NCBI GenBank assembly: GCA_038496445.1
Contig: JALMLS010000578.1
Span: 503,816 to 567,815 of the forward strand
Direction: 5' to 3'
Length of the DNA stretch: 64,000 nucleotides
DNA from: Trichosphaerium sp. ATCC 40318
Lineage: Eukaryota; Protista; Tubulinea
Below the pieces are notes generated by a model, which saw only the letters and a list, made by a program, of their open reading frames with translations, did not search any database and was not told where the DNA came from. This document shows positions 26,674-31,671 of the stretch, one piece after another. Made by a program: the position numbers and the translations under genes. Every line of letters begins with the position of its first letter. Position 1 is the first letter of the stretch.

Positions 26674-27030
26674 ATGGCATCAAACGGCGAATGCATTCAT
26701 GATGCAGAATACGTAAAATACTTGGAACTAATTGAAAAAACCAAACGCCTAACAAGACAGCTCGATGCTCTGAGACGAGAAAATAACAGAATTAAAAAGC
26801 AAGAAGCTGTGAAAAAACGAAACGAGATTGATCCTACAGTGATAATGGTTGCGAATCGAAATTTAAGAATTGTACTCAGTGCATTTGAAAAGGCAGGAGA
26901 CGAAAAATGTGAAAAGTTCTTTCAAGCAGCAGCAAGTGCGCTTACAAGAGAGGAACGAATTAGCCTAAAGAAGACTTTTATCAGTAATGATAGATTAGTA
27001 GAACTAGAGAAAGAGTATACCTCCAAGTGA
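26674..27030 (+). CDS. small intronless coiled-coil hypothetical protein
   Basis: 118-aa ORF with a charged, heptad-like stretch and an A-rich ATG context. Confidence 0.6.
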   Translation: MASNGECIHDAEYVKYLELIEKTKRLTRQLDALRRENNRIKKQEAVKKRNEIDPTVIMVANRNLRIVLSAFEKAGDEKCEKFFQAAASALTREERISLKKTFISNDRLVELEKEYTSK

Positions 27031-27334
27031 GAGTTATGTAGCACTTGTAAATTGAAGAAGTACTTCCCATTGAGCAAGTTAATAAACATTTTGTTTATCA
27101 ATCATTTCTTTGTTTCGTTTGAACTGTTGTCCTGAATTTACCTTCACGCCCACCCTCATATTATGAGGGTTGAGTTTTGTGTAAATTCATATACGCTGGT
27201 ACACATCGAGAACGGAAAGAGGGTAGTAGAATTGCTTTTTATTTTATTTGTTTTCTTTAACTTTTGTGACATTGGTTTCTTCCTGACCTGCTTTTTTTTA
27301 ATCTTTCTTACGATGTTATTCCTTCGTTGTGTTT

Positions 27335-29843
27335 TTAAAAATCGTAGACGTAGTTTGAGGAACTGAACTTGTTCAATGCTCTAATGATAGCTTCTTTAGT
27401 TACTTCTTCTTGTGACGTAGCGGTAGGTAAAGCATAGTTATGACCAACACATTCAGAGCTAAAGAAAGAAGTAAACTCTCTGAAAGAGAAGAAAAAAGAA
27501 AAACAAAACATAACAGTGTTTTAAAGATAGACATGTTTGTGACTGTATAGTACGAAATGACGTACCGGAATAGAGGTATAACACCTGTACAACGTGCTCT
27601 AGCGAAAGAAGGTCCTGACTCACCAACCCATGGGATAAGAATAAAGCGAGACTGTTTGCTAGAGATAGCAACGCCAATAGCCGAACTTGCCTTATGATCA
27701 ACAGCAGATATTCTAAAAGTTCGTTTAGAATACTCAAAGGGGTTACAAAGAAGCCATTTATAAATATGCTGAAGAGCGTAGTCGCTTACAAAATGCGTAA
27801 AACGACATTAAGCAGAACTGAACGTTGAAAAAAAAATAAAAATTGAAGTGCTTGTAAATGCTTTGTAGCGCTTGTAAATCATACCTCAATGCAGCAAATA
27901 CAATAACTTCATCTGTAAAGTACTTTCCAAGTGCCTCAATACCACCATCGCCACTACCAAGCTACAAAAAATCAATTACAAAAAAAAATCACAAGATGAA
28001 AGGTTTTCGTATTTATAATACATTAACAAAACGTACTAGAGTTAATGTTTTACCGCCACTGTATCCGAAAGCGAAAAAATTTGTTTTAGATGCATCTTTT
28101 CTTAAATCATCCCATAATGGCTTTACAACTGACATATCAACTGCGAAACCAGCATACTAACAAAGATTAGACGGATTTTTTAAAGATGAAGGAAGAAAAA
28201 ACTTCTCTTCCAAAAGTATGCGTTAGAACCATACCTTACGTGCAGGCTTAGACACTGGCTTCTTGTGCTAAACAAAGGCTATCAGATGAAGGTAACTGAA
28301 GGGAAATAAAAGGAGCCTGAAAATTTCTAGGTGATGTCCAAATAACGTACTGCAGTGCGTTTGAAAACACGTGATGGTGATTGTTTCTTTGCTGTATCAG
28401 CTGGAGGCTTTGCTGGTTCTTTAGATGCCGAAATATCTTTCTTTTCAGTTGTAGGAGAGTGCTTTGAAAAAGTAAGTTGATACAAAGAAAGTGAAAGGGC
28501 GTACTGGCTTTCTAACAAATTTTTTCCTTGGCGTTTTCTTAGGCTCTGTCTCTTTGACAGGTTCTGGTTCTTTAGCTGGTTCAGGTTCTTTGACTGGCTC
28601 TGGTTCTTTGGCTGGCTCTGGGGCTGGTTCAGGCTCCGGTTCTTTAGCTGGTTCTGGAGTTGGCTCTGGTTCTTTAACTGGTTCTGGCTCTTTAACTGGT
28701 TCAGGTTCTTTGACAGGCTCAGGTTCTGGCTCTTTAACAGGTTCTGGTTCAGGTTCAGGTTCTTTTACTGGTTCTGGTTCTTTGACTGGCTCTGGGGTCG
28801 TTTCAGGTTCCTTTACAGGTTCAGGTTCTGGCTCTGGTTCTTTGGCAGGTTCTGGTTCTTTAACAGGTTCAGGTTCAGGTTCTGGCTCTGGTTCTTTGGC
28901 TGGTTCAGGCTCCTTTACAGGTTCTGGTTCTTTGGCTGGCTCTGGGGTTGGCTCAGGTTCCTTTACTGGCTCTGGCTCTGGTTCTGGTTCTTTAACTGGC
29001 TCTGGAGTAGGTTCAGGTTCTTCCACACGCTCTTGTTCTGTTTCTTGTGGTTTCTCAGTTTCTGTTGGTTGCTGTCCAGTACTCAAACCATTGTCTGAGT
29101 CTAAAGATATTGGTCAGTGGAAGCGAAAACACAAGAAAAAAAAAAAGGGCGAGATTGATTTTTTTAAGTTGTTTCCTTAGCGTTCCCGCAAAACCCACGT
29201 GATGGGAAATTGAAAAGAGCGAAATATGGGGACGGTGAGGCAGTTTAAAAATATTTTAGGTTTAGAGACTTTTTAAGTGTCCAAAATAGTCGTAAATCGA
29301 TCAAAGACGCTAAAAGACGCATTTGTGATCTGTTTTTAGAGTATTCGAAGGTTTTACAAAAAAACTGACGAAAAACGAAAAAAAGTTAATCGCCCGTATG
29401 GTCCTTACAAACGCGTTGTTTTGAAACAATACAAATAAACAACTAAAAGAAACGGTTTTTCTAGAGTCGTGGATTTTTTCTTTGGCTTGTAATTTCGTTA
29501 TTTGGGAAAAGAGCGCTACGAACCTACGTAAACGACATTATTTGTGTTTTTAGCTTCATCTGTTTCGTTCGGTTGTGAAATGTCGTACACCCACTTGTCA
29601 TCAACGACAAATTTGTATGTATACTTGCCAGGTGGTAGAATGAGTTCTGCTTGAAAAGTAGATCTCCCGACTCTGTCAAGTGGGATAGGTTCTTGCCACC
29701 AGTCCCAAGAACCGCGTAGGAACACTTGGTTGCCACCGTGCTTCCACGTAAATACTATGCGAACAAGTTAACGAAAACGGGTCATTTAAAATGCTATTAT
29801 CACCGGAAACGTATGTAATTTAGCGTAACGTACCTTTTGCCAT
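27335..29843 (-). CDS. CBM48 (AMPK-beta-type glycogen-binding) + EPEPVK repeat + coactosin-like ADF-H fusion protein
   Basis: N-terminus [38 protein letters not shown] is spliced in frame to the repeat exon. Later exons give [48 protein letters not shown]. Confidence 0.82.
28535..29025 (-). repeat. coding tandem repeat ([12 protein letters not shown], ~18-nt unit with variants)
   Basis: Imperfect repeats of ggttctggttctttaact-type units are visible directly. Confidence 0.95.
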
Positions 29844-29895
29844 ACTGTGAGGACTATATTATGAAATCTCCTTACCGTTCGCAAAATTGAAAAAA

Positions 29896-31671
29896 ATGCG
29901 CACGGTACACTGAGTGTCAACTGTTTTCAATTTCGAACCGACACGGCGTTTTAAGAGTCGTTACAATTGTGTACTTTGCACTGTTGGTGTTTGTAAAGAG
30001 TGTACGCTTGCGTTGCGGAGTTATCAGTCGATTAAAGATCTATCTTCAGCGCTTCTAACGTGCTACGTTCCTGATGCAATATCTCACTGTGAAAGGGGTA
30101 TCACAGTGTATTAAGCAATTTGTTTCTCTGCCTAGTGCCCAAAGCAAATTATCGCCTGTGTTCTGCACTGAACTACTCAAAGACGACCCACCGCCAAAGG
30201 TACAATGAAGAAAATAACGCTTTAGCTTCAGTTAATTTGGAACTTCTTTAAACTGTGCCGTAAACGCTCACAGTGCTTAAAATAGGCCGTTGTAGTACAA
30301 AAAGTGAAACATCGTGTTGCCAACCCTTTAAAACCGTTTTATTCAGATGAACCGTCTCTACTCTACTGGGCCACGCTACGAGGCGTAGATTTAAACAAAA
30401 AGCCAAAAACAAAGGTGAAGAAACCTCTATTTTGTGTAATTACCTCACATTACGCCTAAGCCGCCACCCAAACCTCTATTACCTCCGTTCGAATCTATTT
30501 TTAAAGACGACGAACAATACACAGTACCACAACGCCCATACTACATAGAAGTAACTTAGTGGAAACTCCCTCGTCGTTTACTAACGCGCTAAAACTAATT
30601 AGCTTGCAAAAGCGATCATTGCATGGATAAAATCCAACAAATTTCCGTTCACTTTTGTACCATTTTCCGTACGTTCCCTAGCGCTTTTACGATCACCTAT
30701 GTGGTTGCTCGCTTCAATACGATAATTTGAAGCAATGACACACTTATTGATGACGTTTTAACGGAACTAGGGACCAGGATTGTCCGGTCAAATGACGGAT
30801 ACTGTTGATAGAATAAATGAAAATACTCCAATGTTTTCTAAAAGAATGTCTGATTGTGAGTCAGAAAATGGCATGAGGGATATCATAAACGATATCATGA
30901 ACGTATGTGATCTATTGAAAGGACTACAAGGTTCCAATATTAATGACGAGTGTAGTTTTTGGGTGAGAGAGGCATAATGACAATGTTGAGATTTCGTGAA
31001 ACAGTTGGCTCTGCTTTAGTGTTACCACCTGGACCTAATCAGCTTTTGGATTCCTTTCGTGTTTTTCATGATCCAGCTTCAGCTAATCCATTAACTGTTG
31101 GTGCTAGAGCATTATCAAAGCACTGTGTTAGGTACGTTTTGAGAAACGCGAGTTGGATTAGTTTTGCATCTGATATTTTTTCTCTTTTGTAGGAGTAAAG
31201 ACACGTGGTGGGGAACTGAAAAAAATACAACTGTTTACCAAAAAAATGTGCATGCAGAAAAGGTCTTAAGAAAGATATTACATGCTGCAGCTTGGATGAA
31301 TGTACACACTCTTCCAGTACGTCAAAAAGAAAAAGTTGTTTCTTCCCTTGTTTAGTTATTCTTCTATTTTTGTGTTCTTTTGTCAGATGCGACGATGATG
31401 TTAGAGCACATCTCCAAATGCCAACTAATGTTTTAATAGCATGACATATATGTACTTGAGATTAGAGAGAAAAACGGCTACGGTACATTGTTTTTCAAAG
31501 TTTTTTTTTGCTTTTTTCGAAGCTAAAATGTAATTTAAGGTGCACGATGGCTTGCAACTTCTCCGTATCATTTCCGCGGTTTCCTAGAGCCTCAAATGGC
31601 GGATGGGCATGAGAAAGGTAGTGCACAAATCTTCTATTTATACTCACCTTGGTGCAGGATGGAAACACTAA
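29896..31671 (+). CDS. homologue of the C-terminal domain of plant 'ASCH-domain' proteins
   Basis: LTVGARALSKH..R..WWG..KN..WMNVH..EIRE..GYGARW..FRGFLEPQMADGHEKGWKH*. The 5' end is uncertain. Confidence 0.7.

Follow-up and report, generated by a model that had tools for sequence, protein, structure and literature searches.

Can a single gene fasten the stored sugar of a cell to its actin network? The question is raised by positions 27335–29843 of a 64,000-nucleotide stretch of the genome of Trichosphaerium sp. ATCC 40318 (contig JALMLS010000578.1, positions 503,816–567,815 of the forward strand; hereafter the window, all positions being those of the window). An earlier note, made from the DNA letters alone, had read this interval as a spliced gene that joins an AMPK-beta-type glycogen-binding module to a PEVK-like spacer and a coactosin-like ADF-H domain. 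We find that the gene, which lies on the minus strand, is real and expressed. Its predicted product begins with a CBM48 module, continues through a long Glu-Pro spacer and a basic linker, and probably ends in an ADF-H domain of the coactosin type. Judging from these domains, we put the chance that the protein is a glycogen-to-actin tether at about even.

Is there one gene, and is it transcribed? The model was built by joining exons at canonical GT..AG sites on the minus strand and was then checked against transcript contigs. Ten public runs were found to hold 6–40% of the words sampled from the stretch, most of them 19–40%, which is the share expected if exons alone are present. Contigs from four of these runs (X1, X2, X5 and X7, from four studies) were aligned to positions 26900–30500; they are 95–99+% identical to the window. 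The resulting gene has nine exons and a coding sequence of 1449 nucleotides (nt) in one open frame, translating to 482 amino acids (~54 kDa), and its coding span agrees exactly with the interval 27335–29843 given in the earlier note. It opens with an ATG at 29843, preceded 18 nt upstream by an in-frame TAA. All eight GT..AG introns are spliced out of the contigs at the predicted borders, six of them in all four runs.

The glycogen-binding module and the spacer are separated in the DNA by intron 2 (29101–29523, GT..AG), at 423 nt the longest intron of the gene. Contigs from X1, X5 and X7 have lost it. They run across the joint 29100>29524, in each case combining all 231 nt of the CBM48 exon with 181–219 nt of the repeat exon. 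The proposed junction between the two (VYV-D-SDNGLSTG) is therefore real, and the CBM48 exon is not a separate transcript ending at the TAG at 29516, since it is spliced onward in the contigs. Depth within intron 2 is zero in all four runs, so there is no sign of a second start there.

Could two messages nevertheless share the repeat exon, one carrying CBM48 with part of the spacer and the other the rest of the spacer with the ADF-H-like region, so that no fusion protein is made? It speaks for such a division that no contig spans the repeat at ~28725–28880 in one piece. On the other hand, assembly from short words is expected to break contigs at repeats; the coverage of exon 3, which holds the repeat, is unbroken in three runs; molecule ends do not pile up within it; and the frame is open throughout. 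We regard two messages as very improbable. That CBM48, the spacer and the C-terminal domain lie on one spliced message is supported by these data.

How do the strains represented in the contigs differ across the gene? Six coding substitutions were found in the 1449 nt, and all except one are synonymous. Three of the synonymous differences fall in the ADF-H-like exons, one in exon 6 and two in exon 8. The sole non-synonymous difference, Ala to Thr, is in the repeat. The 3′ untranslated region carries 5 substitutions and 3 insertions or deletions in ~100 nt. The numbers are small, and the pattern of coding against 3′ untranslated differences suggests a protein under purifying selection.

What is the N-terminal module? 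It is encoded entirely by exon 2 (29524–29754, minus strand), which is preceded by a first exon with 10 nt of coding sequence. Residues 5–80 match the Pfam family AMPK1_CBM (PF16561) at 83.6 bits (cut-off 26.8; E-value, E, 1.2e-23), covering profile positions 5–79 of 85. Among sequences of solved structure in the PDB, the carbohydrate-binding modules (CBMs) of AMPK beta2 and beta1 match it end to end, with E from 2e-14 (beta2) to 6e-12, and the next-best relative is the plant phosphoglucan phosphatase LSF1. Likeness to the AMPK/SNF1 beta CBM (PDB 4Y0G, 1Z0M) extends over the full module at ~40% identity. Judged on its sequence, the assignment to CBM48 is certain, and the AMPK-beta type proposed in the earlier note is borne out.

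Does this make the protein a kinase subunit? No exon piece matched the C-terminal domain through which AMPK beta interacts with the alpha and gamma subunits (AMPKBI, PF04739) in Pfam. There is also no space for it: the remainder of the protein is wholly occupied by the spacer, the linker and the ADF-H-like region. The absence of this domain had been noted before, correctly. The N-terminus reads Met-Ala-Lys and lacks the Gly2 required for myristoylation. Because it is without both the alpha/gamma-binding domain and Gly2, the predicted product belongs with the CBM48 proteins and not with the AMPK beta subunits.

Might the module still bind sugar? The residues of AMPK beta that contact sugar are conserved in an alignment to 4Y0G: W99/100 corresponds to Trp23, K126 to Lys51, W133 to Trp58 and N150 to Asn75. 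(The AMPK beta numbering was verified against the beta2 peptide 142–154 quoted in PMC4416872.) Either of the substitutions W100G and K126Q in the beta1 module abolishes glycogen binding (PMC6274970). Two further pocket residues are changed, L146 to Ala71 and T148 to Asn73. Thr148 of AMPK beta is an autophosphorylation site that switches glycogen binding off (PMC4416872); since Asn stands in its place here, that phospho-switch cannot work in this protein.

The two replacements also bear on the ligand. The AMPK beta CBM contacts the kinase domain as well as glycogen, and a CBM48 altered at the Leu146 and Thr148 positions might bind another glucan, or a protein surface. We think this distinctly unlikely. 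All four of the residues that hold the sugar, two Trp, a Lys and an Asn, are conserved, and the nearest solved relatives, AMPK beta and LSF1, bind glycogen or starch.

The CBM48 exon both begins and ends in phase 1, and the 423-nt intron follows it. A single exon of symmetric phase 1-1 is the classical form of a shuffled exon, and is what one would expect if the module had been moved by exon shuffling.

What separates the two ends of the protein? Exon 3 (28505–29100, minus strand) encodes 199 amino acids. It starts with an acidic, non-repetitive head (residues 81–104), continues with 19 units of the form (EP)n-[VA]K (residues 105–270) and runs into the start of a basic linker. The 166 residues of the repeat carry a net charge of −35 and consist of Pro (36%), Glu (34%), Lys (13%) and Val (8%), these four making up 91%. 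The earlier estimate of about 160 residues of Glu/Pro/Val/Lys repeats was accordingly close. The linker that follows (residues 271–330) is rich in Lys, Pro and Ser; its 60 residues bear a net charge of +15 and have an isoelectric point of 11. It is completed by exon 4 (28351–28461), whose joints 28461>28505 and 28267>28351 are found in all four runs, and by exon 5 (28235–28267), a micro-exon of 33 nt at the end of the linker, again with both joints in every run.

Is the spacer PEVK-like? The PEVK segment of titin and the Glu-Pro/Lys-Pro rods of proteins such as TonB consist largely of Pro, Glu, Val and Lys and are extended and non-globular. The spacer resembles titin PEVK in composition and in the extended shape that would be expected of it. 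The unit differs: 6–12 residues here, against 28 in titin. No match to PPAK was found in Pfam and the spacer has no 28-residue repeats of the PPAK type, so that the earlier description as PEVK-like holds for the composition and fails for the repeat. The one Pfam match of the spacer, to trypanosome procyclin, is compositional and lies below threshold (29.7 bits, cut-off 100). As DNA, the repeat is old and degenerate, with periods of 18, 54 and 150 nt and 63–81% matches. Its composition rather than its exact sequence is apparently what has been kept.

Pro-rich polyampholyte segments tend to be extended, at ~0.3 nm per residue. The spacer is unlikely to fold, being too rich in Pro and too highly charged. 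We infer that it is extended, and that it would span up to ~50 nm if polyproline-II-like. A glycogen particle has roughly this size.

Two observations on the repeat DNA belong here. Between 28880 and 29020 the transcript contigs depart from the window: X7 has an in-frame insertion of 6 nt behind 28977, and joints in X5 and X7 skip 77 nt or step back by 54 or 114 nt. These are either variation in repeat number among strains or assembly errors in the repeat. On the opposite (plus) strand, an open reading frame of 229 codons rich in Gly, Ser, Leu and Thr (28491–29180) was considered and rejected; it is an artefact, the Glu-Pro repeat read in mirror image, and not a gene.

What lies at the C-terminus? 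The candidate ADF-H region comprises residues 331–482 (152 amino acids) and is split over four exons. Exon 6 (28037–28156) starts the domain, exon 7 (27885–27961) encodes its second part, exon 8 (27566–27712) its core, with the F-loop (SSKQSR) and the strand FILIPWVGE, and exon 9 (27335–27458) its end and the stop codon TAA (27337–27335). The joints of exons 6 and 7 occur in all four runs, as does 27458>27566, at which the frame is kept. A first model had placed the last acceptor at an AG at 27479; all four runs use 27458 instead. The two sites are 21 nt apart and in the same frame, and the rejected one would add seven residues.

Domain searches were run on single exon pieces of 25–48 residues each. 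Searched against the 177,635 sequences of the PDB, the exon-8 piece gave seven matches with E below 0.3, and six of the seven, including the best, are coactosin-like. The six have E 0.13–0.26, and query positions 17–40 correspond to chain positions 69–92 of 141. An E of 0.13 is marginal as the outcome of a blind search. As a check on a prediction already in place it is strong: coactosins make up only a handful of the 177,635 sequences. The register agrees: 50 residues separate the aligned block from the C-terminus in both proteins, so that their C-termini coincide. The F-loop and the next strand match best, and for them the coactosin side (PDB 1T2L, 1VFQ; also compared was the Entamoeba protein EhCoactosin) reads MSKRSKFALITWIGE. 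Arg415 aligns with Lys75 of human coactosin, keeping a basic residue at that position. Lys75 is required for the binding of human coactosin to F-actin and is dispensable in the Entamoeba protein (PMC4161475). Coactosins stand alone and measure ~140–150 residues; the domain predicted here is of similar size, forms the C-terminus of a 482-residue protein and appears, from the exon-8 register, to carry ~10 extra residues before the F-loop. We conclude that the last 152 residues are probably a coactosin-type ADF-H domain.

The C-terminal region might still have some partner other than actin, either as an ADF-H fold with a different ligand or as another fold altogether, in which case the protein would recruit something else to glycogen. 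The ADF-H protein GMF has Arp2/3 as its partner, and 5-lipoxygenase is a further ligand of human coactosin. Three of the four exon pieces are without a solved relative and none matches in Pfam, the single match stands at E 0.13, and the extra residues seem to precede the F-loop. Against this, six of the seven PDB matches are coactosin-like, as had been predicted before the search, the domain length and C-terminal register fit coactosin, and the Lys75 position is still basic. We consider a partner other than actin improbable.

If both ends bind as their domains predict, how might the protein work? It would be a non-catalytic, cytosolic linker protein. The N-terminal CBM48 would dock on the alpha-glucan chains of glycogen granules. 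The C-terminal ADF-H domain would bind the side of an actin filament without severing it, as coactosins do, perhaps with help from the basic linker next to it. Between the two ends of the protein, the acidic (EP)n-[VA]K segment would serve as an extended spacer, keeping them apart. In an amoeboid cell, storage granules would in this way be held or positioned on the network of actin.

Several points weigh against this tether. At the level of the message, no contig in the four runs bridges the CBM48 exon to the ADF-H exons, the assemblies breaking within the repeat, and we infer that the source runs are RNA from their clean loss of introns and exon-confined coverage, not from the run records. 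In the CBM48 pocket, the Leu146 and Thr148 positions are altered. At the C-terminus, exons 6, 7 and 9 found no match in the PDB, and none of the single ADF-H exon pieces, which at 25–48 residues are short for a profile, matched Cofilin_ADF (PF00241) in Pfam; the ADF-H call rests on one match of 24 residues together with the register. Of the earlier coactosin-like ADF-H assignment, then, the part encoded by exon 8 stood up to comparison with coactosins and the other three exon pieces did not add to it. Exon 8 gave no usable match in the ESM Atlas.

The main rival to the tether is a protein with the same set of domains and a different purpose: an actin regulator gated by glycogen. With full stores, CBM48 would keep the coactosin-like domain parked on granules, releasing it upon glycogen depletion; or it would build a stabilized coat of actin around them. 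Actin dynamics would then follow the energy store. There is precedent for both halves. The CBM of AMPK beta is a glycogen sensor whose binding is regulated (PMC4416872, PMC6274970), and coactosins stabilize filaments and oppose cofilin (PMC4161475). However, with Asn in place of Thr148 that form of regulation is absent, and a spacer of ~166 residues is better explained as a linker that keeps a distance than as part of a sequestration device. We judge gating by glycogen to be unlikely, if less so than a C-terminus that does not bind actin.

Are there known systems that resemble the proposed tether? In plants and algae, proteins of the PTST (PROTEIN TARGETING TO STARCH) family are also non-catalytic, and through a CBM48 they recruit a partner to the granule of storage glucan (PMC4339375). 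They differ in being plastidial, in combining CBM48 with coiled coils, and in binding starch synthases rather than the cytoskeleton. Stbd1 is, like the protein proposed here, a glycogen tether: one end binds the glucan through a dedicated module, and the opposite end is fixed to a cell structure (PMC5358331). Its module is a CBM20 and its anchor sits in the membrane of the endoplasmic reticulum; it links glycogen to membranes and autophagy, and is not known to have an actin-binding domain or a Glu-Pro spacer.

Is the combination found elsewhere? An exhaustive, profile-free search with the CBM48 exon returned 2599 relatives at E of 0.001 or below. The best 150 of these are mostly proteins with several CBM48 modules, at most 49% identical, and among them is neither a copy of this protein nor a region like its C-terminal domain. 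These 150 reach down to ~68 bits, and orthologues with a single CBM48, for example in other amoebae, may score lower. From the spacer end, a word-index search gave low-complexity matches only. A second such search, from a stop-free stretch around exon 8 and scored on that exon, found no candidate sharing three words among proteins of 74–236 residues, a range that does not take in proteins of ~480. In the JGI metagenomes, neither the exact spliced exon-8/9 junction nor any relative of exon 8 was found. No paralogue was found in the window, and none of the papers searched combines CBM48 with coactosin or ADF-H. As far as we have looked, the fusion of CBM48 with ADF-H is new; the searches were shallow on the ADF-H side and blind to orthologues of ~480 residues whose CBM48 has diverged.

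The flanks of the gene and its surroundings can be described briefly. Exon 1 (29834–29882, minus strand) is joined to exon 2 at 29754>29834 in X1, X5 and X2. Its coding part (29843–29834) supplies Met-Ala-Lys and one base, and the 5′ untranslated region extends to 29882 or beyond; the contigs reach up to 49 nt past the joint into exon 1. Farther upstream (29905–30191) are contigs at a depth of 2–5, compared with 20–46 on the gene. They could come from a weak transcript of their own, or from a minority of molecules with a longer 5′ untranslated region. An odd AG..AG joint (29998>30050, depth 2) also lies upstream of exon 1. The 3′ untranslated region of ~100 nt (27234–27334, minus strand) is bounded by contigs that end at 27234–27249, running into sequencing adapter. 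About 200 nt from the 3′ end of the gene ends a convergent, plus-strand open reading frame of 118 codons (26674–27030), whose product has many charged residues and, by eye, resembles a coiled coil; its depth is zero in the four runs over the aligned part, 26900–27030.

The neighbouring genes in the window are RCC1-like, F-box/LRR and bromodomain genes, and give no functional hint for the CBM48 fusion. No Rfam family was found in the window. There are 67 copies of the palindrome CACGTG in the 64 kilobases, compared with 9.1 expected and a largest count of 17 in shuffled sequence. The sites are spread over exons, introns and intergenic DNA; two lie in this gene, at 28368–28373 and 29196–29201.

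What would such a protein mean for the cell? The positioning of glycogen granules in cells is poorly understood, and we know of no dedicated glycogen-to-actin linker. Enzymes of glycogen metabolism associate with actin structures (PMC3240831). If the protein described here bound both partners, it would be a simple natural linker of glycogen and actin, and one that is directly testable. It would also offer a ready-made design, a binder, a rod of set length and a second binder. More tentatively, this gene may belong to a family of modular tethers, each combining CBM48, a Glu-Pro rod and an anchor, that places glycogen granules on different structures, actin being the one served here. In such a family CBM48 may have been spread by exon shuffling through its phase 1-1 exon, and the granule surface would be a general docking platform in the lineage. 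If the tether is real, the sugar-binding module of AMPK beta would be able to serve as a general address label in proteins that are not part of the kinase.

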